Shown one piece after another: positions 5,759 to 54,341 of a stretch of DNA of 64,000 nt. The position numbers were made by a program, and so were the translations under genes. Origin of the DNA: Pavona decussata. Its lineage: Eukaryota. Under the pieces are notes generated by a model. The model searched no databases, had not been told where the DNA came from, and was given only the letters and a program-made list of their open reading frames with translations. The stretch is taken from positions 744,001 through 808,000 of the forward strand of contig CDRNST010000144.1 in assembly GCA_977016875.1 (NCBI GenBank), read 5' to 3'. Numbering within the stretch: position 1 is the first letter of the stretch; each line of letters begins with the position of its first letter.

Positions 5759-6381
5759 ATAATTTCTTTCAATTTTATATTTCCTTCAAAAGCTTGTTAT
5801 CAGAGTTCCCATAACTGGAAACAAAACATATATAACAGCAAATAAACATAGGTAACGGCTGGCGATATCACTTATATTTTATAAATTTCCCTTGTAGATT
5901 TTGATATTTCAGTGGTCTTAGATGTTGCTTTGCAAATAAACAGGCTAAAGACCTAATTATGAATTCCTGGGCCAAAACTTCACATTTTGAACTTGATATA
6001 CAATATCTTATTACGTAGTGTGTGGAAAATAAATTTAGAAAAGTTTTCTGACAAACTTTAGCGTATTAGCGTAGCGGAAAAAGTCATTGCTTCAAAAACA
6101 ATGAAATCACCTAATTTAATTGATTTCTTATTCTAAGTTTGAAATGTGAACTTTGCACTCTTCAAAATCGCAAAATCATCATGCCGAAAAGAAAAAAAAT
6201 AATGAAATTAAAAGATAATAATAATTATAATAGTAATATTAAAAATAATATCAAGTTGGTATTCACTATAGTCATAATAGAATGCACCCCACCCCGCTCG
6301 AAGCGCTGTTGAAGTGAGCTCTTGTCTGGGGCAATGGGAAGCAAGAAGACTCAATAATTAGAGTCATGAAAGTGTACTCAC

Positions 6382-7034
6382 GCTAAAGAAACTTGAAAGA
6401 GGCAAAGACTTCTTTCCATGAACACTTTGTCACTGGCCTCAACACAAGGTCGTTCTTCTTTATAAAAATGATAACCTTCTTGGATGTTGCCAAACATGGA
6501 ATATCCATAGTTCAGTTTACAATCTTTACATTGAAGTGATAGCTTCATGGCAGTCCTCGCACTCTCCCCCGAAAACACAGTCACTGTGCAGACTTTGTTC
6601 TGTGCTACAAGCAAGGATTCACAATTGCAACAGTTGGTGACTGGTGGAATGAGGATTTCGATTTCTCTAACTTCATTGCACGAACTTCGCGGCAGATCAG
6701 CTGTGCAAAACAGAAGGACATTAGCCAGCTGTTCGATGTCAATATCCCCAACCAGACCTAACTTGAAGTAATAGGCCAGCAACGTATCTTTTGTTACCTT
6801 TGGAATAGCTGAAGGGAAGGCACATATGATTTCTGCTAGCCAAATAGCATTTGACAATTTTGCTTGCACAACCATAAGAATATCTTTTTTGTCAAGCGCC
6901 AAGCATAAATCGTGTAAATCTCAAATCGGAAGATTTCTTAACCTCTGCAATCCTTCTTTGATGTCACAACTCTTTCTTTTTCTTTCGGCGACACCAGATA
7001 CATGTAGGAACGCTTTTTCGGATGGCGAAGCCAT
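6382..7034 (-). pseudogene. CxC5 cysteine-cluster exon of a KDZ transposon gene
   Basis: ATG at 7034, one in-frame TGA, then ORF 6902-6378 with LIPPVTNCCNC..L...TVFS......SLQCKDCKLNYGY...VFMERSL. Ends at a splice donor GC|GTGAGT at 6381. Confidence 0.7.
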
Positions 7035-7128
7035 GACACAGTCATGTCCAATATAGACAAACTGATACGGTCTGAAAAAACAGCCTCACAATCCGTAGGG
7101 ATTGTAAAGACAATTTTTGGTCCATATG

Positions 7129-7816
7129 CAGTCTGACAATTGCATCTCATTACCTGAGCGACGGGTGAACTTTTTGACAATCCGTACGGTTTGTATAGAT
7201 CGTAAAGGCACTTTTCAGTTCCTATACGTCCCATAAAACGTATACAGTCTGACAATTGCATCTCATTACCTGACAAGACGAGTGAACGGTTTGACGATCT
7301 GTATGGTTTGTACAGATCGTAAATTTAAACGTTCTAAATTTGAAAGGCAAGAAACTGCGTATAACCTAAGAGACTCTGATAATAAGCTCAATGTTCCATT
7401 GCCGCCCACAAACTACTATAAGAATAGCTTCAGCTATAGTGGCGCCACCCTTTGGAACAGTCTTCCGTGTGACATAAGACAAGCAGAGTCCTTTGGGCTA
7501 TTTTAGCGCTTAATTAAAGAAGTACCTTGAGGCACAGCATTTGTGGAAAGCAGCTTCAGTGAGGTTTAGGTTTCAAGTATAGTTTTTACAATTGTATCTT
7601 ATCGATTCAATGCATGTTGATACTGATATATATTTCAATGTTTTATTTGTAGCTGATGAATTGTCCGTGGATAAATAAAGATTATCCAAAGGCACTTTTC
7701 GGTCCGTAATACAGCCTGACAATTGCATCTCATTACCTGAGCAACGGGTGAATGGTTTGATGATCCGTACGGTTTGTACAGATCATAAAGACACTTTTTG
7801 GTTCGTATACGGTCTA
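7129..7816. repeat. Three ~105-116 bp tandem subterminal repeat units, the second split by a LINE
   Basis: Unit cagtctgacaattgcatctcattacctga...gtacggtttgtacagatcgtaaaggcacttttc at about 7129, 7245 and 7712. Confidence 0.85.
7324..7688 (+). mobile_element. 5'-truncated CR1/L2-group LINE (ORF2 C-terminus and 3' UTR)
   Basis: YNLRDSDNKLNVPLPPTNYYKNSFSYSGATLWNSLP is a typical C-terminus of these LINEs. The tail is AATAAATAAAGATT. It interrupts a repeat unit at ...gatcgtaaa|ggcacttttc. Confidence 0.8.
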
Positions 7817-8072
7817 TAATCAGAATGTAAGTTGAAAAGTAAACAAAATATAAACTAGGGGCTGATGCTGTAAAATACAACAACTATGTTTTCTTCGTTC
7901 TTTAGTGTGAAAAACCAAATGATGCATTTCTTACAAAACAAAACATTACAATCGGCTGGAGTTAGGGAACATGTTTTCCTGACGACTAATGCAGAATACT
8001 ATAGAGTAAAATTAGTATTTTATGGAAAAAGTAGACTGTACAGTAGTACTGGTCAATAAGTTTAGTGACATT

Positions 8073-8097
8073 TGGTGGCTCCTAAAGGAGCCGTTGT
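8073..8097 (-). terminator. Replication-dependent histone-type 3' stem-loop
   Basis: The minus strand reads ACAAC-GGCTCC-TTTA-GGAGCC-ACCA: a 6-bp stem, a 4-nt U-rich loop and the typical flanks, 32 nt after the ORF stop codon. Confidence 0.75.
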
Positions 8098-8124
8098 GAG
8101 AGATCATTTTGTAATGACTCTCTT

Positions 8125-8554
8125 TTACTTCGGTAACCCACTCAGGTACAGAAATTTGTTGTAGTCTACATCATAGTAGAACCACAGATGGCTTTTCTGC
8201 TCGCCATTGTTGAGGACAAAATCGACTTGTCTTGCCCTCTTTTCTACTTTAACTGTTGATTCCGCCCAGTGCTACGCCAGCATTATCCATCTTCTGATAA
8301 GGCTTGGCTCACAACCGTTACTGATGAGAAAGAGAACCACCTTGAAGGTTTAGGTATCACCCATGCATAGGTTTTTTCCAGAATATGAGCCGCATTTCCT
8401 TTGGCCCCGATTTTAATGGAGAGAATGCGTCCCAGTCAATTACTCTGGTCAACTGCCTTCTTTCCTCTACTACTGCTGCTCGTGACAGTAAACGAGTTTC
8501 TTTCATATCCTGAAGACACCTTACAGAAACCTCTGAATTTCCATTCTTTTTCAT
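8125..8554 (-). pseudogene. Small intronless ORF (~140 aa), possibly primase large-subunit CTD/PriX-like; frameshifted
   Basis: Reconstructed as MKKNG...DAFSPLKSGPKEMRLIFWKKPM/GDT*TFKVV/LFLISNGCEPSLIRRWIMLA*HWAE...KRARQVDFVL...HLWFYYDVDYNKFLYLSGLPK*. Clearly homologous to the ORF at 34818-35087. Confidence 0.6.
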
Positions 8555-9725
8555 TTTTCTTTCCTTTTATTTAATAAGCAAAGGACTCGCGTTGCCTGGT
8601 TGTCAATAATAAGTTGTTACAGTTGACATCAAACACCTCCTATGTCTTAAAATGATTTCTAATTTCATCTCACCTTTCTATCGGTCAAGTTCAATTCCTT
8701 CCCCACATTGAAAACAGGGAGAGCTTCAGTTTTCACTTGTGACCAAACGCGCAACAACAAAACATAATTTCAATCCTCCAAAATGGCAAATCGACTAAAC
8801 CGTCTTGTTCTGGACCTGCAGACTTGCTACAAGTACGATTTAGACTGGTCCCGGTTATCAGTAAAGCTCCGTGAGGTATGTTCTGAACTTTAATTTTCTT
8901 TTTTGCTTTTCGTAAGCTGTCTTGTTGAAGCAATATCTTTCGTTGTTTCTGAGGTAAACAATAAATCGGTGAAAGCGGGCATTATGTTATAACTTTAGCT
9001 TGGCTCGTGCTTGGTTGTCATGGCCTTGGTTTTGATTTTCGTAACACGATATGTATGTTATTTCGACAGATATGTCAACTTTTCGGAAAAGAAATGAAGG
9101 AGCGAGAAACAACTGTCCTCCTTGGGTTCCTCATGGTAATTTCCTTTTCCTTGGGGCACGCCAGTCTTTCCCTGAACAACTTTTAGACAGAACCGATCAT
9201 CACGTGGATGGCCATCGTGCTTCCAACAGGTAAGGCTTCTTTAAATACTTGTCGCAGGCTCTTGTCACCATTTAAGAAACTAGTTTCCTTTAAAGATTGC
9301 GCCTGGTTCTCGGTCAGTGGGGACAAACCCAAAAATGGGTGAGCAACTGAGATAAACAGGGAAGGTTTCGTACAAAATTCAGTTCCTCGAGTTCCCGGGC
9401 TCAAGTTAGAAGTTACATTTTTTTCGACCCAGGTGTATGCACACATGCATGACTTACTCCAGCACCCATCAATGCAGAACCTAGGTAAGACATTACTGAA
9501 CTCTTTAATTAAGCCATTTGCCAATAATAAAATATTCATATTTAATACAATCTATCAGTAAATTACCTAATCAAGTATTTAGCTTTGTAAAAACCGAAAT
9601 ACAGTTTATCTTCAAAATTTTAATTTACACTTCTGACAGGCAAATATGTCAATGTTTCCCAGTCTGTAATTATATAACTAAATAAGTTATTCGCTTTCAT
9701 TGCAGTTACTTTATCCTTTCAACAG

Positions 9726-10493
9726 ACACCATTTGTTATGACGATGCCTGCCATTTGAAAAAATTTGCCCAGAACACCAAACGTAGCCACCTGACCCCCA
9801 CAGCGATGAGGATATGGGATATGGAAATTGTGTGTGACCGATTTCATTTCCTAAATCATGTGGATAAATGGTGTAGAAAAAACTGCAACCCACACAATAC
9901 ACAAAATCTAAAGGTAATAAACTAGCACAATTCAATTGCTCTATAACAGAACTTCTGTTATCTACTTTTTTATGTAGATAAATCAGTCAAGACAATCAAC
10001 TATTTGACATTGTGCTGTTCCAATGAAACAACTGGTTTTTAGCCTAGTGATCACAAATAATCAACCCCTCAATCACTTTTGGTGGTTTTTTTTTTTAACC
10101 TCTATGTTATATTTTGAAAATCCCTCTCCCTTTTGGTTACATGTAGTTTATTTCAATATTGATATATTTAAACAACAATATCTTACACTATCATCTCCTT
10201 GATTAATGTTTCTATTTCATCAACAGAATATCAACTCCGAAGTGTGCGAACAACTATTCTCCTGGTTGTCAAGATATGCCAAAATTACAAACCATATGAA
10301 CTGGTGGAGGTTCATGTTTTTAATGCTTTTCCTTTTGGACAACCAGAGCAATGATGTAGATCAAAAGAAAACTCAGTGGTCATCACATTTGTGGATTAAA
10401 CGCTTTATTTCCCCATTACTCAAATTTGACCTATTAGATTTAAGACAACACGTTCAAAAAAGTACATGTACAACATTTTGCCAATATCATTAA
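9726..10493 (+). mobile_element. KDZ transposase C-terminal exons (9726-9913 and 10227-10493)
   Basis: TICYDDACHLKKFA...IVCDRFHFLNHVDKWCRKNCNP is joined in frame by a GT-AG intron to NINSEVCEQLFSWLSRYAKITNHMN..RFMF. These are the YDxxC, DxFHxxxH and NxExxEQ hallmarks of KDZ transposases. Confidence 0.85.
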
Positions 10494-10854: not shown

Positions 10855-11003
10855 ACGGACATCCAAGGACTGTATACGGACCGAAAAGTGCCTTTACGGT
10901 CTGTACAAACCGTACAAGCCCCTCTCTCAGATAAGACGTGGAAATATTTTAAGTGTCCCTAATAAGATACGGGCTGAAAGGAGTCTTTACAATCTGTACA
11001 GAC
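10855..11003. repeat. Copies of the 7.1-7.8 kb subterminal motif, inverted relative to those
   Basis: tatacggaccgaaaagtgcctttacggtctgtacaaaccgtac is the reverse complement of the 7.2/7.8 kb unit core. A second degenerate copy lies near 10968-11003. Confidence 0.75.
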
Positions 11004-11620: not shown

Positions 11621-12211
11621 TTACATACATTATGTTAATGTATGAGCATGCGTAAATCAAGGCTGACCATCAATAATGGCGTCATGGCACACGCGCGATT
11701 CCATCGAAGAAGAAAGCTCATCTAAAGTAGAGAAAATCTTCGCAGAAAACTACATGGAAGTACTGCAGGAGAGCTATTGCAGCTCTGATGATGACGTTGA
11801 TGAAGAAGTGCACAGTAAGGAGAATATTTTGGTCACGCGTATATTCATCCACCATGATGGAAACTCTAGCTTTATAATAGGTATAAGTATAAAGTTCTGA
11901 CAGTGTTGTATTCCCAGACAATCGGGGATTTCACTATTTCCATTCCGTCCCAGATTTTGCCAAGATGGGAAAAAGTGAAATCCGCGATCCTCTGGGATTT
12001 AGCCCACAGATAAAAACTAGACTTTGTTACAATACCAAAGTGTGTAAATGTTACTTATTTCTTTCTTTCTTCCTTTCGTTCTCTCTTTCTTGTTTGTTTT
12101 TTTGTTTTGTTTTTGGTTCTCTGTGTTGTTAACAAGCTTATATTTGTTTGTTCACCTGTTCCTTTCTGTTTCTAATTTTCCAAAAGGGAGTTCTTCTATC
12201 CAAAAGGAGGT

Positions 12212-12699: not shown

Positions 12700-13650
12700 A
12701 TGCAGAAAGGAAAATTAGAAGGGAGCAGCACCAGCACCAACACATCAACCCAAACACTCTCCGTCACAAGCACTTCACTTGATGGTGTCATAATGGACTT
12801 TTTCACAGGCATAAGGCCCCACCTACGCCCATTTATCCAACTTTCACCCGCCCCGTACACCCCACCCCATATGCATCATGTCCACCCCACCCCGTACGCA
12901 TCACGTCCTCAAACGACATCCACTACCACCCACGCCACTCCAGGTCCATCAACCACTTCTACTACCACCCACTCCACCCCATCTTCACCTATCCGTTTCC
13001 TTTCCCATTATCACACACTAGTCACTTTCACTCCCATCATGCCACCTGCAATGTCGCCTCTCCCTCCCCCTGGCCCCATCCCCAAGAAACGTCGCCGGAC
13101 ATCACCCTGCCCTTCTATTATCTACCCTAACCCTAACCCTCCTCCTTGCCGTATAGAGCCTCGCCCCAACATGTCCACCATCACCCACCTTCCCATTATC
13201 TACCCAAGACCTACCCCTCCTCTTTTCATTCTTTCAAGTTCAGCCCTACGACCATTTACCCAAGCCCACCCTATGCGCCATCCCATCCCAAGATCATCTA
13301 CTCCTCCTCTTCGCCATATACAGCCTTGCCCCACGGCTTCCACAATCACAGGCCCCACCAATACTGCCCCTATGCCCGCATCACCTGGGATGCATTCGAC
13401 CCCCCACACCTCACAACCATTCCCCAGCACCTATTCGCTGGTTTGGAGTACCCATTACAGCGCATTCACCGTCACAAGCACCTACTTGTCACAACACACA
13501 CTTCAATCCAAATGTCGTTTATTCTTGACGCATATGCTGTCGACCCTCCCCCCAACAAGATCAAGAACAGTGGGGACCCACACCCAGCCACGACGCACTC
13601 GCCGCCATTCCATTGAGATGTTACCTGTTGTGGCCGACAAATGTATATAA
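12700..13650 (+). CDS. Pro/Thr/His-rich ORF of unknown function; the true C-terminus is probably in the 13146-13616 frame
   Basis: 316-codon open frame in strongly C/A-skewed DNA with an NLS-like PKKRRR. The alternative frame gives more globular text (YCPYARITWDAFDPPHL...SFILDAY). Confidence 0.35.
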   Translation: MQKGKLEGSSTSTNTSTQTLSVTSTSLDGVIMDFFTGIRPHLRPFIQLSPAPYTPPHMHHVHPTPYASRPQTTSTTTHATPGPSTTSTTTHSTPSSPIRFLSHYHTLVTFTPIMPPAMSPLPPPGPIPKKRRRTSPCPSIIYPNPNPPPCRIEPRPNMSTITHLPIIYPRPTPPLFILSSSALRPFTQAHPMRHPIPRSSTPPLRHIQPCPTASTITGPTNTAPMPASPGMHSTPHTSQPFPSTYSLVWSTHYSAFTVTSTYLSQHTLQSKCRLFLTHMLSTLPPTRSRTVGTHTQPRRTRRHSIEMLPVVADKCI

Positions 13651-37680: not shown

Positions 37681-37802
37681 CAGTATTGGATCAGCCTTTA
37701 CAGACTTCTTCACACAGACTTCAACGTGGACAATAGCTGACAATAGGTACACTGTAAATTCCTTTCTTGCGTAATAAGCTGAGTAGCAAAATCATCAGAA
37801 AT

Positions 37803-38645
37803 ATGGCTTTCACAGAGGACAAATTTAACAAGCAACTAGAGGTAGCTAAACTCAAACTCGAGGAAATAAGGAAACTGTCGTTGAGTGAGCATATGGAGGA
37901 TATTTCACTAGCTCATGACCAAATTGGAGCATTAATCACGACGCATGAGAAATCGAAGGAAGGGACAGTTGAATATTTGATAGAGTCAGATAAGGACTTA
38001 GAGTACATCAAAATGTGGCAAACAGAAAACAAGGGGGCCTTCCAGCCGTTTCGAGATGCTCATCTCGACATTAAAAAAAAATTAGACGAATTTATTAGGG
38101 CAGAACACCAAGCGCAAAAGATAAATGAAGAGCAAACAAGGCTCAAATTACGTCAACAAAAGGAAATCGAGAACGCGGTAATGGAACAGCCACAACGGGA
38201 AGAAGAATGGTATCTCCGAAAACTGGACTTCGAAAAACAAATTGGGCAAAGTCATGCGGAACACGCTAAAGGGGCGGATTTCGGAAAACCTGACAAATCA
38301 TCGCCACAGTCAGTAAAATTGCAAAAATACACCATTACACCCTTCAATGGAGACTACAAAGATTCGCTACGGTTTTGGAACCAATTCTCGGTAGAAGTAG
38401 AGGGCTCGACAATATCGGAAATTAGCAAATTTAATTACTTACTGGAGCTCGTGAAGGGGAAACCTAAAGATGATATCTTAGGACTTCCACATAGCGAAGA
38501 TGGTTACAAGGAGGCCAAGCGGATCCTAGAGCCGACCTATGGGAAGGACACCAAGGTGCAAAGGGCACTCATCAAGGAACTCGAAGATCTCGCCGGAATC
38601 ACAAGTATCCACAGGCTCAGCAATATCCACGACTTCTACAACAAG
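37803..38645 (+). CDS. gag: BEL/Pao Gag (DUF1759-type), truncated
   Basis: VKLQKYTITPFNGDYKDSLRFWNQF...KFNYLLELVKG...GYKEAKRILE..YG. Confidence 0.85.
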
Positions 38646-41424
38646 CGATGTTTAATCAAGTTGCTGTCCCGCCAGAGGATCAAGTTGCCCTTCGTTTTCT
38701 GTGGCGTCAATCACCTGGATCTGAAGCAGAAGTCTATCAACACCAGCATCACATCTTTGGAGCCAAGTGCGCACCAACTTGTTCTAACTATGCGCTTCTC
38801 AGAAGTGCAGAAGAAAATAAACTGCAGCCCTTGCAGTAAAGCGAAACTTCTACATGGATGACTTTTTCAAGTCCGTGGAATCGAGCAGCGAAGCTCTGGA
38901 ACTGCAACAGCAACTGGTTGCAATGCTGAAGTTTGCAGCATTTAACTTGACCAAATGGATCTCAAATGAAAAGGAAATGATCGAGCGTATAACAGTATCA
39001 GAGAGAGCTCCCTCTGTAAAGGTGGTTGAAGAAGAAACTGTCATGCCTGTGGAACGTGCTCTTGGTGTCATTTGGGACACTAACTCTGACTGTTTTGTCT
39101 ACAAGGTGGTTAAAAGGGACTTGGCAGACACGCAATGCAAAATTTTGAGTCTGATAGCATCATTGTTCGATCCAATTGGGCTCCTGGCTCCATTCCTGGT
39201 GCGAGCAAAAATCTTTCTTCGACAAGTGTGGCAGTTTGGTATTGGCTGGGACGATGCACCACCAGCAGAATTCCTCATAGAGTGGTCCAAATGGCAGGAG
39301 GAACTGGAGGGGCTTTCAGAATTCTTTGTTCCCCGGTTTTATCGTCATGTTGTGGACACTCCATCTGTTATTGAGCTCCATGTATTTGGAGATGCCAGTG
39401 AACTGGCATTCTGCTTAGTAGCTTACTTTAGATTCAGCTATGCTAGTGGAGCTGTGAGATGTGCCTTTGTTACAGCTAAGATGCAAGTAGCACCCAAGAA
39501 GCCATTGAGCATTCCTAAGCTTGAACTGCAGGCCGTAGTATTCAGTGCGAAGTTATCTGCTGTAGTAATCAAGGAGCATGATTACAACATTGATTCTAAA
39601 TACCTTTGGACTGACATTAGCACTGTATTTCAGTGGATTCGTGGAGAGTCAAAGTGCTACCCTGCATTTATCGGTAATCAAATTGGTGAGATTCTGGACA
39701 TGACGGAACCCAGTCAATGGAACCACTGTCCAGGTCCATTAAACCTGCAGATGATGGTAGCAGGGGACTTCCGGTTAGGTCAATCGGGTCAGAGAGCAGG
39801 TGGCTAAATGGTCCTGCCTTCCTGCATCTCCCTGAAGAGAAGCGGCCAAAGGGGAATTTACAACTTGAAGCCTCCAACCAACCCATGAATGACCTGCAAA
39901 CCCAAGACATGGCAGTAAATTGGACTGGTGCAGTGCAAGATTCAAGGCGTAAATTCATTTCCTTGGATAAGTAGTCATCCTTGACGCGACTCCTCAGAGT
40001 AACTGCCAGCAGTTTTTGGTTTATTTACAACTGCAGACGCGCAGCGGCTGAACATCGAATTCGTCAGTTGTCAGTTGAAGAGTTGGAGCAAGCTCAGAAA
40101 TTCTGGAACCGCAAGGCTCAAGCAGAGTCCTTTCCCCAAGAAGTTGCCACTCTCAAGAAAATTCTACCCATTTCAAGCAAGAGCAAATTGGTTTCTCTTT
40201 CACCCTTCTTGGACGAAGAAGGAATGGTTCGTGTTGGTCGGATTGAGAGAGCCAATATACCATATTCTGGCCACCACCCTTTGGTGTTGTCACCTGAGCA
40301 TGAGCTGAGCCGTCTTATCTTCATAAACTGCCATGAAATGATTAAACATGAAGGCGTTGGACATGTCCGAAACGAATTAAGACAACAGTACTGGATTCTG
40401 CGCTGCCGTGCAACAGTCCGAAAGATTCTATATCAGTGTTCTTATTGCAGAAGGCGAAGAGCAAAACCAGAAGCACCATTGATGGCTGGCCTTCCCTCTG
40501 ATCGTCTACAAGTTGCACCGGCATTCTCGAAAGTTGGAGTAGATTTCTTTGGTCCACTGAAAGTGAAGCATCTCAGGAAACAAGAAAAGAGATATGGTTG
40601 CCTCTTTACTTGTCTCGTGACAAGACGTGTGCATTTGGAAGTTGAGCACTCTTTGTCTACTGACTCTTTCATCATGTGTCTTCGACGGTTTATAGCAAGA
40701 CGAGGTAAACCAACTGTCATCTACTCTAACAATGGAACAAACTTTGTGGGAGCCAACCGCGAGTTAAAAGAATGCCTTTGTGAGTGGAATCAAGATCGAA
40801 TTGCAAATACACTGAGTCAAGAAGGAATTCAGTGGGTATTCAATCCACCCGCCGCACCCCATATGGGGGGAGTATGGGAGCGTTTAGTGAGGTCCTGTAA
40901 GAAAGCCCTTGATGCTGTCCTGCAGAATCAAGTCCTCACGGATGAAGTATTAGTGACCGCCATTACTGAAGTTGAGTGGCTAGTCAACAGTCATCTTTTG
41001 ACTGAGGTGAGCTCTGATGTGGACGATCTTGGAGCGTTGACTCCGAATCATTTTATTATTGGTAGAGCATCTCCTAATCTGCCACCTGGTATTTTTGCTG
41101 ACAAAGAGATATCGTCTCAGAAGCGTTGGCGTCAGGCACAAGTTATCACCACCCATGACTGGAATCGATGGTTGCGAGAGTACCTGCCTGGTTTAGCTGT
41201 TTACAAGAAGTGGTTTCAGCCTATGGCGAATGTTAAGATTAGTGATTTGGTGCTGGTAGTAGACTATGGAACCCTGAGAGACTCCTGGCCTCTTGGCAGA
41301 ATTGTCAGAGTTTTTCGCTGGCCATGACAATGTCGTAAGATCAGCTGAAGTGAAGACCAAGTTTGGTTTGATGAAACGTCCTGTTGTGAAACTAGCCCTC
41401 CTAGAAGAGTGTTCGTCCATTTAA
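38646..41424 (+). pseudogene. pol: BEL/Pao Pol: RT C-terminal half, RNase H, integrase (frameshifts and stops)
   Basis: MFNQV...LRFLW, FGAKCAP, YMDDFF, ELHVFGDASE..F, SIPKLELQA, integrase H..H...CxxC, GVDFFGP, SNNGTNF, GGVWERLV. Confidence 0.9.
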
Positions 41425-50203: not shown

Positions 50204-53200
50204 ATGACTGAGGCGCTCAAATTACTATCGCTAAATGTAAGGGGCATAAGTAACTTTAAAAAAAGAAGAACAATTTTTACTTGGTGCCGGAAACGCGCAG
50301 ACATTTCTTTTCTGCAAGAAACCCATTCTACAGCAACAGCAGAAAATCAGTGGAAAAACGAATGGGGTGCAGAGCTCATTACTTGTCATGGCAGTTCAAA
50401 TTCCTGTGGTGTGGCAATTCTAATTAAGAAAGATGTTGATTGTACTATACACCAAAAAATTTTTGACCCTTTGGGACGCTATATTGTTCTAAAAGCTGAA
50501 ATCAAAGATAAGATGTATGTGCTCATAAATGTATACGCGCCAAACAAGGATAAAGATATTGTTGCCTTCCTCAACAAACTACTTATTACAGCACAAAATG
50601 AGGATCTAGATTGTGAAAGTAACATCATTATTGGAGGCGATTTTAACTGCCCCCTAAATCCTGCTATTGATAAGAAAGGTGGCATTCTCATTGAACGACA
50701 ATCCGTGACATCCTGTATCGATTGCTTGAAAAGTGAACTTGATTTAGAAGATATTTGGAGAATGAAAAACCCAGATACTAAGAGCTTCACATGGAGTAAA
50801 AAATCTCCTCGAATCTTTTGTCGTCTTGACTATTGGTTAATTTCGAATAACTTAACCGATTCGGTACAACTGACGGATATAATTCCAGCAATTAGAACAG
50901 ATCATGATGCGATCTTTTTAGAGATTGGCGGAAATCTTGATCATGTGGGTAGAGGACCAAGTTACTGGAAGTTGAATTGCTCTTTACTAGACGATGAAGA
51001 ATATATTAACAGTACAACCGAAATGATTCCAGTGTGGATTGCAGAAGGACGGGAAGAACTTTCCGACGATCGGTGTGTGTGGGAGTGGGTTAAATATAAT
51101 ATACGAGCTCATGCTATCCGTCACTCCGGTAGAAAGGCAAAGCAAAGAAAGGAAACGGAAACAAAACTCCAAAATGAACTAAACGTAACAAAGCAAGCTT
51201 TCGAAAGCAACCCTAGTGATTCTAATGCTACTTTGTTTGATGTTGCTCAGAAAGAACTAGAATATTTTTATGAAAAAAAAACCAAAGGAATCATTGTACG
51301 CGCACGTGCTAGATGGCACGAATACGGCGAGAAGAGTACAAAGTACTTCTTAAATTTAGAAAAGAGAAATCACGTCAAGAAGCACATACGTAAATTGTAT
51401 GTAAACAACGAAATTAAAACAAATCCACTCTGCATACTAAATGAGGTAGAACAATTTTACTGCGACTTGTACAAAAGTAAAAACAATCGTCCGGATATTG
51501 AAAATGAAATAGATTCCTTTTTAAATAATTTAAATATACCCAAACTCTCTGAAGAACAGAAAATTTCCTGTGAAGGTAAAATCACTTCAGAGGAATGTTT
51601 TCGTCTTCTTGATACCTTTCAAACTAACAAATCTCCAGGAAACGATGGAATTCCAATTGAATTTTATAAAAAATTCTGGCCTTTAATCAATGATTGCTTC
51701 ATAAGGTGTGCAAATGAATGTTTTGAGAAAGGGGAGTTGTCCCATTCTCAAAAGCGTGCGATTATCACGCTTATTGAGAAAAAAGGAAAAGATCGTTCTC
51801 TTATTGAAAACTGGCGCCCCATTTCTCTTGTGAACGTTGATGCAAAAATATTGTCTTAGGTAATTGCATCGAGATTAAAAAATGTTTTGCCTTATATCAT
51901 TCATCATAATCAAACAGGGTATATTAAAGATCGTTTCATAGGTGAAACCATCCGTTCCATCTATGACATTATGGATTGGACTGCCAACAAAAACATTCCC
52001 GGCTTAATGATCTTCATTGATTTCCAAAAGGCATTTGATAGCATTGAATGGGATTTCCTTTTTAAATGTATTGAAGCCTTCAATTTTGGTTCTGATTTTC
52101 TTCGCTGGGTAAAACTGTTCTACAACAAAGTACAAAGCTGTATTATGAACAACGGCATAATTTCAAAATCCTTTCAACTTGAGCGAGGTGTCAGACAGGG
52201 TGATCCTCTTTCTCCCTATCTTTTCATTGTAGCGGTGGAAACGCTAGCTATTACCATTCGTCAAAATCCAGCTATAAAGGGTATTACCATTGGGAAAGAA
52301 GAGACAAAATTGTTACAATACGCAGATGACACAACAGCAGTACTCGCTGACACCAACTCAGCCACGGTACTTTTTCAACTGCTGGATTTATTCAAAAATA
52401 TCTCAGGACTCAAGATCAATAGCACAAAAACCGAGGGTTTGCGGATTGGCTCTTCTAAAGGAAATAAAGCAAAACTGTTAGGCATTAAATGGCCAAATGA
52501 GCCGATAAAAGCCCTGGGGGTGTATTTCACGTATGATCCAAAATTACTGAAAGAAAAGAATTTTATTGAGCGATTAGATAGCATTAAAAAACTTATTAAT
52601 ATTTGGTCCTCAAGAGGTTTATCTGTCTATGGTAAGGTGACAATAATCAAATCCTTCCTTGTTCCAAAGTTTGTTTATGTGTGCTCGGTACTACCTACAC
52701 CTAACGAATTAGTGAAACAATTGAATCAACTGTTATTTAAATTCCTTTGGAATGGCACGGATAAGGTAACACGCGTTTCGGTAATAAATGAATACGAGGA
52801 AGGTGGATTAAAAATGATCAATTTAGATTGCATGATAAAGTCCTTAAGGCTGGCATGGTTAAAGCGTATTTTTGAAGGTCAGAATGGAACGTGGAAAACC
52901 TACCTACAGCACTTGCTAGAACCGATGGGAGGTTTTTTCTTCTTAAATTGTAACTATGATATTAAGGATTACAAAATCTCTTCTAAGTTTTATTGTGAAC
53001 TACTTTCTTGGTGGTCAGATTTTCGTGACTCTTTTGCCTCTCAGAGAGACTGGCAAAATGTTATTTGGAATAATAAAGAAATTCACATTGACAGAAGACC
53101 AGTTTTCTACAAAAATTATTTCATGGCAGGATTGATCTTTACTCAAGATCTACTTTTCAGTTTAAATATAGAAGACTCTTTTTGCCACTGGTCGCATAAG

Positions 53201-53926
53201 ATTTCCAAAACTAACTTTTTGCAATGGGCTGGCCTTCGACATTCAATACCTTCTTCTTTAAAAATTACTTCTCCCTGTCCATCTACAGCCTCTCCATTAT
53301 TTTCAATTGATGACAACATCTTTGATGTCACAAAAAAGAAATCAAAGGACTATTACTCATTACTTGCACGCAAAAAAGCACAGCCTCCTAATATCGTTCG
53401 TAAATCGCAGAATGATTTTAATTTTTCGTTTGATCAGCTGAGAGAAATCTTCACTCTGCCACATTCTGTTGTGCTTGAATCATACGTAAAAGGTTTTCAG
53501 TTTAAAGTGATCAACTCTATTTTATACACAAATTCTAAATTATATAAAATAGGCTTCAAAACGGATGATCTGTGCTCGTTTTGCAAGGCAGAATCTGAAA
53601 CCTTACACCACCTTTTGTATCAGTGTCCCTTTGTTAGACAGTTTTGGAATGATTTTCAAGATTACTGGCACCAACTCTCAAATCAGCAAATTCGTCTTAC
53701 TTTTCAAGATGTTTTATTTGGAATTATAACTAAACCATGCCCTTTACTTAACCTACTGAATTATTTTATAATAATTGGGAAACTGTTTCTATGGGACTGC
53801 ATAAGAACCCAGATTCGACCCAAAATCCAAGGATTTCAAAGTAAAATAGTCATAAAATATGAAACCGAAAGAAAGATCAATAACACAAAATTCTTTAAGA
53901 AAAAGTGGGTACTATCCCCAGTTTAA
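50204..53926 (+). pseudogene. L1 ORF2: APE endonuclease, reverse transcriptase and C-terminal zinc finger, with a single in-frame TAG at 51857-51859
   Basis: SLNVRG, LQETH, GGDFN, RLDYW, TDH; KSPGNDG, WRPISLVN, DFQKAFD, GVRQGDPLSP, QYADD; CSFC...HLLYQC. The two ORF pieces are in the same frame. Confidence 0.95.
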
Positions 53927-54193: not shown

Positions 54194-54341
54194 NNNNNNN
54201 NNNNNNNNNNNNNNNNNNNNNNNNNNNNNNNNNNNNNNNNNNNNNNNNNNNNNNNNNNNNNNNNNNNNNNNNNNNNNNNNNNNNNNNNNNNNNNNNNNNN
54301 NNNNNNNNNNNNNNNNNNNNNNNNNNNNNNNNNNNNNNNNN
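54194..54341. other. Assembly gap (N run) in the L1 3' UTR
   Basis: Run of N bases. Confidence 0.99.

Follow-up and report, generated by a model that had tools for sequence, protein, structure and literature searches.

The window, by which we mean the whole 64-kb stretch of DNA analysed here, contains a short reading frame on the minus strand that is followed by a histone-type stem-loop, and a spliced gene that starts head-to-head with this reading frame and runs along the plus strand (Table 1). Histone3 (RF00032) was the sole Rfam model to match the window above its gathering score, with 34.7 bits (E = 2.6e-6) against a gathering score of 34 bits. The stem starts 32 nt past the stop codon of the upstream reading frame, its 5′ arm reads GGCTCC, the loop TTTA and the 3′ arm GGAGCC, and ACCA comes directly after it. 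As judged from shuffled sequence, 0.01 exact occurrences of the 16-mer of the core are expected by chance, and the 91 nt around the core fold far better than shuffles (z = -4.45). An earlier annotation made from the letters of the window (the sequence-only reading) had described a histone-type hairpin 32 nt past a stop codon, with C-G as the top pair instead of U-A, and had proposed the comparison with Histone3 as a check. Both the distance and the match bear it out, and the top pair is indeed C-G where the Rfam consensus has U-A.

Table 1. Features of the two-gene region and its surroundings, in positions of the window.
Feature	Positions	Strand	Basis
174-aa ORF with CxC5 cluster, downstream of the stem-loop and on the same strand	6381..6902	-	PF18718, 39.2 bits (cut-off 26.9)
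Left arm of the inverted repeats on either side of the two-gene unit; belongs to a ~117-nt tandem repeat found at 7088-7323 as well	7688..7814	.	repeat search I1, I7
HDE-like downstream element position, degenerate here, purine run broken up	8050..8066	-	alignment A2 and locus table
Full Histone3 match (A/C-rich 5′ flank, stem-loop, ACCA, downstream stretch)	8053..8097	-	Rfam
Core of the histone-type stem-loop, with a 6-bp stem, a 4-nt loop and C-G as the top pair	8077..8092	-	Rfam, 34.7 bits; fold; own covariance model R1, 48.1 bits
Second hairpin (8-9 bp) immediately 5′ of the stem-loop, taking up most of the 32-nt 3′ UTR	8098..8122	-	fold of 91-nt stretch
Broken copy of the ~131-aa family ORF, including stop codon; 1 frameshift and 2 in-frame stops	8125..8554	-	comparison with intact relatives
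Short head-to-head intergenic region between family ORF and partner gene	8555..8782	.	8525-8852 81% identical to L048
Divergent spliced partner gene, apparently shortened internally	8783..10493	+	exon-by-exon tblastn
Right arm of inverted repeats	10868..10915	.	I1: 48 nt, 88% complementary, 3053 nt between arms

The reading frame upstream of the stem-loop had been taken for an intronless ORF at 8073-8554. Its intact relatives are single-exon genes, in agreement with this, but the window copy is not one open frame, as it is split between two frames and contains two in-frame stops. The accompanying statement that the ORF is not a histone stands: no Pfam family matched it, and no histone appeared among the fold matches in PDB. 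Two paralogues of the window copy (L047 and L048) are present in another assembly; they share 87-89% DNA identity with it and are both broken as well. These two closest copies are also the only ones to have in common with it the 3′ arm of the second hairpin. A purine block downstream of the stem was not scored as present in the window; L047 and L048 retain theirs. Judged from its letters, the window copy is a pseudogene, with a dead ORF, a weakened downstream element and an intact stem-loop. On account of the damage to its ORF and its downstream element, we regard this copy as most likely a relic.

Searching with the first frame-piece of the window ORF by itself (65 aa) retrieved a family of intronless genes. 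Intact members encode proteins of about 131-160 aa, with which the three pieces of the window copy all line up collinearly. According to a profile search, the family comprises 353 protein clusters at 90% identity. Nearly all of these are nameless entries from assemblies of ENA, Logan or JGI. The sole member with a name comes from the stony coral Porites evermanni, where it is entered as an "unnamed protein product"; assembly GCA_942486025.1 of this species carries locus L053. Ten columns of the protein are invariant in the family. Nothing matched in Pfam or in PHROGs, nor in a sequence search of PDB with either the single protein or the profile. The AlphaFold model (pLDDT 85) consists of six helices and a C-terminal beta hairpin, and a fold search of PDB with this model gave no significant neighbour; in both Pfam and this structural comparison, the protein failed to show the identity of a histone fold or a linker histone. 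What we describe is a previously unannotated stony-coral family of a helical protein of ~131 aa.

A different picture was obtained when the model was compared with predicted viral structures using Foldseek, which returned some ten proteins, all of them uncharacterised, from CRESS-type or circular DNA viruses (probability 1.0; E between 8.6e-5 and 1.5e-2; TM about 0.5). Together with the lack of a PDB match, this modelled likeness would suit an endogenised gene of a CRESS-type ssDNA virus, whose histone-type end would be a viral adaptation to S phase. The likeness, however, is one of fold level only, at 15-24% identity, and the matched viral proteins are themselves without known function. Moreover, no Rep or capsid gene was found beside any copy, the neighbours being CxC5 genes (see below), and we consider a viral origin very unlikely. 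The idea that the ORF encodes a replication protein likewise gained no support, as the protein has no relative in Pfam or PDB and its sole likeness is to the fold of these uncharacterised proteins.

The stem-loop turned out to be a property of much of the family. Loci were sampled from metagenome contigs (44 loci) and by exact protein look-up (23 loci), and the counts are based on the 49 loci with at least 150 nt of downstream sequence, using a script window of 500 nt past the ORF end. A sense-strand hairpin of the same type followed the ORF in 28 of these 49 loci according to the script, and a covariance model built from 24 hairpins added two relics (L040 and L042), bringing the count to 30 of 49. 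When this model was run over 436.5 kb on both strands, it produced 35 strong matches, and all 35 were situated just downstream of ORFs in the sense orientation. Several relatives scored below the Rfam gathering score of 34 bits: L010 with 32.7, L016 with 30.3, L011 with 23.3 and L001 with 18.4 bits.

The window match itself lies just 0.7 bits above the Rfam cut-off, which is what might be expected of a chance hairpin or of the leftover 3′ end of a histone pseudogene. Such an origin was nevertheless rejected and has, in our judgement, next to no probability, since the same hairpin stands after the same non-histone ORF at about 30 independent loci, no histone-like coding sequence lies upstream, and the chance expectation is 0.01. 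No adjacent histone pseudogene, to which the hairpin might have owed its presence, is involved.

With regard to the structure of the stem, 99.3% of the cells were paired among 23 distinct sequences. Stem position 2 was G-C in 23 of 23, loop position 3 was U throughout, and the stem was followed by ACCA. These features are the diagnostic ones read by SLBP, and the same stem and loop positions were treated as diagnostic in a survey of 2,281 metazoans (bioRxiv 10.64898/2026.10.14.759114). Of the top pairs, 14 were C-G and 9 were U.G, and two U.G and one G.U were found elsewhere in the stem, which makes 12 wobble pairs in total. Read from the other strand, the 12 wobbles would become mismatches, which points to an RNA transcribed from the strand of the ORF. 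Covariation, which had been named as a check, gave no independent support: none of the double-sided kind was found among the 23 sequences with a four-nt loop, and the one compensatory pair (in L001) occurs together with a loop of 5 nt. The stem is thus maintained by sequence conservation, as it is in histone genes.

The degree of this conservation differed sharply between the signal and its surroundings. Pairwise identity between copies was 91% in the 16-nt core and 94% in ACCA, compared with 63% in the 5′ flank and 50% in the next four bases; the proteins of eight intact ORFs that bear the stem-loop were 54-75% identical. The recurrence of the stem-loop after homologous ORFs, proposed earlier as a check, was observed in 28-30 of the 49 loci, with the core conserved above its flanks, but it failed in the remaining 19-21. 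In 23 of the 28 loci, a purine block begins 12-13 nt past the stem, and another conserved stretch comes after the block. The sequence-only reading had found no clear purine-rich element downstream, which is correct for the window copy, where it is weak and interrupted, but does not apply to the family. At the level of sequence, these comparisons establish both the anatomy of the signal and the selective constraint on it.

The position of the stem-loop relative to the stop codon was less uniform. A distance of 21-37 nt was seen in many copies, and it extended up to 142 nt and, once, to 351 nt; in intact copies we recorded 31, 37, 56, 87, 101, 118, 142 and 351 nt. The fixed distance that had been put forward as a check was accordingly not found. 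In histone genes, the median distance from stop to stem is 30 nt (bioRxiv 10.64898/2026.10.14.759114), with which the 32 nt of the window copy agree.

The hairpin might also have been kept for another reason, for instance as an element acting on stability or translation, as a terminator-like structure or as a DNA palindrome bound by a protein of the element, with the mRNAs being polyadenylated further downstream. The long distances of 142-351 nt in some intact copies would agree with such a role, as would the absence of double-sided covariation, the near-perfect palindrome that the core forms at the DNA level and the use of AATAAA by members that have no hairpin. On the other hand, the 12 wobble pairs suit a sense-strand RNA only, the diagnostic SLBP positions are invariant, and the asymmetric flanks (A-rich on the 5′ side, ACCA on the 3′ side) combined with the purine block correspond to a histone signal and not to a symmetric DNA site. 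We consider a role of this kind improbable.

As indicated above, the stem-loop is not universal in the family. No hairpin was found in 19-21 of the 49 loci, seven of which have intact ORFs, and L002 retains what appears to be the 3′ half of a decayed hairpin. Simple clustering placed members with the stem-loop across most of the family and those without it interspersed among them, a distribution that fits an old signal lost several times. The P0197 subfamily, which is the most recently amplified one, lacks the hairpin and has AATAAA about 45 nt past the stop. It seems from these sequences that some lineages have swapped the stem-loop for a poly(A) signal. The absence of the hairpin from other copies had been named in advance as an observation that would tell against a histone-type end; it was encountered in some lineages, those with AATAAA, but not in the 28-30 loci that carry the hairpin.

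The P0197 subfamily also illustrates how repetitive the family can be. An identical 144-aa protein is encoded at no fewer than ten places (at least L058-L067) in assembly ERZ25071797, with 98-99.5% DNA identity over 1.5-3.3 kb. Some of these copies lie beside unrelated genes and others form 4.5-kb tandem arrays (L060/L061). The shared unit of 3.3 kb contains no other ORF and has a sharp right edge and no inverted termini. Broken copies are common among the loci of the family as a whole.

Three more stem-loops of the same variant were detected by the covariance model in the flank of one P0197 copy (L059:3310-4921), where they follow ORFs from outside the family. One of them lies 14 nt past the stop of a minus-strand ORF of 231 aa with a protein-kinase domain (Pkinase, 135.7 bits), and the two others lie about 21-22 nt past the stops of two small Cys-rich ORFs arranged in tandem on the plus strand. 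All three are accompanied by ACCA and by a downstream block of a similar kind, and the kinase ORF is placed head-to-head with the first of the small ORFs. A shared trans-acting machinery would give rise to just this situation, in which unrelated genes carry one and the same signal, and the finding suggests a wider occurrence of the phenomenon in that coral genome. Whether these non-histone, intronless, repeated coral gene families, meaning the family of the 131-aa protein and, from at least one locus, the kinase and Cys-rich ORFs, are true clients of SLBP and U7 is a question that we would answer with a tentative yes at best, the odds being slightly against it on the sequences at hand.

Further evidence concerning the nature of the family comes from its neighbours. 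In eight loci (L001, L006, L007, L012, L023, L024, L049 and L052), the opposite strand carries, upstream, a multi-exon gene with a CxC5 domain, and other exons of this partner gene were found in about 12 more loci. CxC5 (PF18718) is a cysteine-cluster domain described as KDZ-transposase-associated. In L052 it scored 29.6 bits, against a cut-off of 26.9. The partner gene in the window starts with an exon at 8783-8875 and has 3′ exons at about 9722-9913 and 10227-10493. The first exon recurs beside the family ORF in ten loci, and the 3′ exons recur in L016, L049, L050, L052 and L054-57 and are shared with the CxC5 gene of L049 and L052. The middle part of the CxC5 gene is missing from the partner gene of the window, and the exons present there gave no Pfam match when tested one by one. 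The view that this plus-strand gene represents the C-terminal portion of a KDZ transposase was accordingly left unconfirmed by Pfam, and CxC5 was verified only in the homologous partners. A KDZ catalytic domain was absent from the exons of the window, L049, L051 and L052 in an exon-wise Pfam search, which a split domain could escape, and none was found among the homologues of the CxC5 exon. A fixed linkage between family ORF and partner gene was rejected, as exon order and orientation differ between loci. The separate CxC5 ORF at 6381-6902 resembles the N-terminal part of another partner-type gene.

The two-gene unit of the window is flanked by inverted repeats (Table 1). These belong to a tandem repeat, and neither a target-site duplication nor exact ends were defined for the unit. 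The repeat has a length of ~117 nt and is present at 7088-7323 and 7688-7819 in tandem on one side and at 10868-11002 in inverted orientation on the other. It flanks the L048 copy too and also occurs in L011. The ~117-nt repeats may be subterminal repeats of an element.

The sequence-only reading had spoken of a mobile element or virus. What we observed is repeated, mobile-element-linked behaviour, as seen from the P0197 copies, the CxC5 neighbours and the 353 clusters, and in this form the claim is sustained. In our estimation the family is probably linked to mobile elements, as distinct from being a proven transposon, the CxC5 domain being the one feature from which a mobile nature is read.

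A rival possibility is that the family is a multi-copy cellular gene of the host, such as a chromatin or replication factor, that is co-regulated with the histones, has histone-type mRNA ends and is arranged in arrays and head-to-head pairs. The 4.5-kb tandem arrays of identical copies in L060/L061 are reminiscent of histone genes, as is the head-to-head pairing. The protein is under purifying selection, and at L059 a kinase ORF and two small ORFs, none of them related to the family, carry the same stem-loop and are again placed head-to-head. A host gene, however, does not readily account for the many broken copies or for the unrelated contexts in which copies are found (PKS, GPCR and kinase genes, retrotransposons). 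Nor does it explain the recurrent neighbour with CxC5, a KDZ-transposase-associated domain, or why a family of 353 clusters has almost no annotation. On balance, we find a host gene of this type rather unlikely.

Some of the loci derive from Logan contigs, which were considered as transcript evidence and rejected as such. Those that carry the gene are genomic, because the intron of the neighbouring gene is retained in them. The Logan contigs of four sequencing runs (L054-L057) begin at an identical base, 86 nt ahead of the called gene, which is probably a repeat boundary in the assembly graphs.

Elsewhere, the window contains remains of other elements. A BEL/Pao-type LTR retrotransposon has left DUF1759, Pao peptidase A17, an integrase zinc-binding domain and DUF5641 at 37767-41327 (+), and a LINE-type element at 50204-53926 (+) consists of two adjacent ORFs, the first for an endonuclease/exonuclease/phosphatase and the second for a reverse transcriptase with zf-RVT. 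A hairpin with 30-nt arms at 11912-11997 scored 34 bits on both strands with the mir-576 model, against a threshold of 99 bits, and is probably a small inverted-repeat element. At 12700-13650, a low-complexity ORF of 316 aa is rich in Pro, Thr and Ser and lies in a segment with a GC skew of -0.27 and a raised GC content. A run of 148 N occupies positions 54194-54341.

We favour the explanation that this is a multi-copy stony-coral gene which travels as the cargo of a mobile element with a borrowed histone mRNA end, and of which the window holds a dead copy; we put its probability at roughly 0.55. The family is read as the cargo of a DNA-transposon-like element because it is dispersed, repeated and usually located head-to-head with or near a CxC5 gene, and it would be this element that borrowed the histone mRNA end. 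In most lineages, a stem-loop that would be read by SLBP, the ACCA flank and a purine-rich element at the position of the U7 snRNP would make up a complete histone-type signal, and in some lineages a poly(A) signal would have replaced it. Given binding by SLBP and cleavage after ACCA directed by U7, the pre-mRNA would be cut a few bases past the stem by the SLBP/U7 machinery. The product would be a non-polyadenylated mRNA, coupled to S phase in that its abundance would follow this phase as in the case of the replication-dependent histones.

Compared with the 3′ ends of replication-dependent histone genes (RF00032), the coral signal has the same stem of 6 bp and loop of 4 nt, a G-C pair at the second stem position, and U at the first and third positions of the loop. 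It also has the A-rich flank on the 5′ side, ACCA on the 3′ side and a purine block about 12 nt downstream. The gene organisation is similar as well, as the stop codon of an intronless ORF precedes the stem-loop by tens of nt and genes occur in head-to-head pairs. In contrast to the histone genes, the coral gene does not encode a histone, its top pair is C-G or U.G compared with U-A in the Rfam consensus, its distance from the stop varies more, a poly(A) signal is used by part of the family, and the processing is a prediction. Cnidarian histone genes use a stem-loop and an HDE (PMC5011920), and in Hydractinia, H3.3.1/H3.3.2 and the H1 variants show that a stem-loop or poly(A) can be used within one family (PMC5011920), as we see here. 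The Hydractinia variants are histones, whereas the coral family is non-histone and repeated.

As far as mobile elements are concerned, the coral family resembles the KDZ (Kyakuja-Dileera-Zisupton) transposons in the CxC5 cluster of the partner gene and of the ORF at 6381-6902, in having a multi-exon partner and in the dispersal of its copies. It differs from them in that an exon-wise search detected no KDZ catalytic domain and in that its termini are undefined. Two-gene DNA transposons of the PIF/Harbinger type have a small accessory ORF beside a larger transposase-like gene. We take the coral protein to have no relation in sequence or fold to the Myb-like accessory protein of PIF/Harbinger, and the orientation of the coral pair is variable. 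A literature search found no description of a KDZ accessory gene with a histone-type 3′ end, and it gave nothing relevant that links histone stem-loops with transposons or with non-histone genes.

Histone mRNAs have been described as the sole mRNAs of the cell known to lack polyadenylation, and in human cells SLBP was found to have no genuine non-histone target (PMC4604434). The conserved histone-type stem-loop and downstream element that we find after non-histone genes represent a signal hitherto deemed exclusive to replication-dependent histone mRNAs. A non-histone family that keeps the stem-loop, its flanks and the downstream element over deep divergence would be a natural exception to this. 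If the coral genes are true clients of SLBP and U7, their transcripts would be the first non-histone mRNAs in nature with a histone stem-loop end, and a mobile or virus-derived element would have hijacked the histone pathway, with its expression confined to S phase. The family would then serve as a test case of the features by which a transcript becomes a substrate for U7 and SLBP outside the histone locus, and it would suggest a simple route by which a mobile or virus-derived element could couple its expression to DNA replication. For the corals, the analysis brings to notice an unannotated gene family with hundreds of members.
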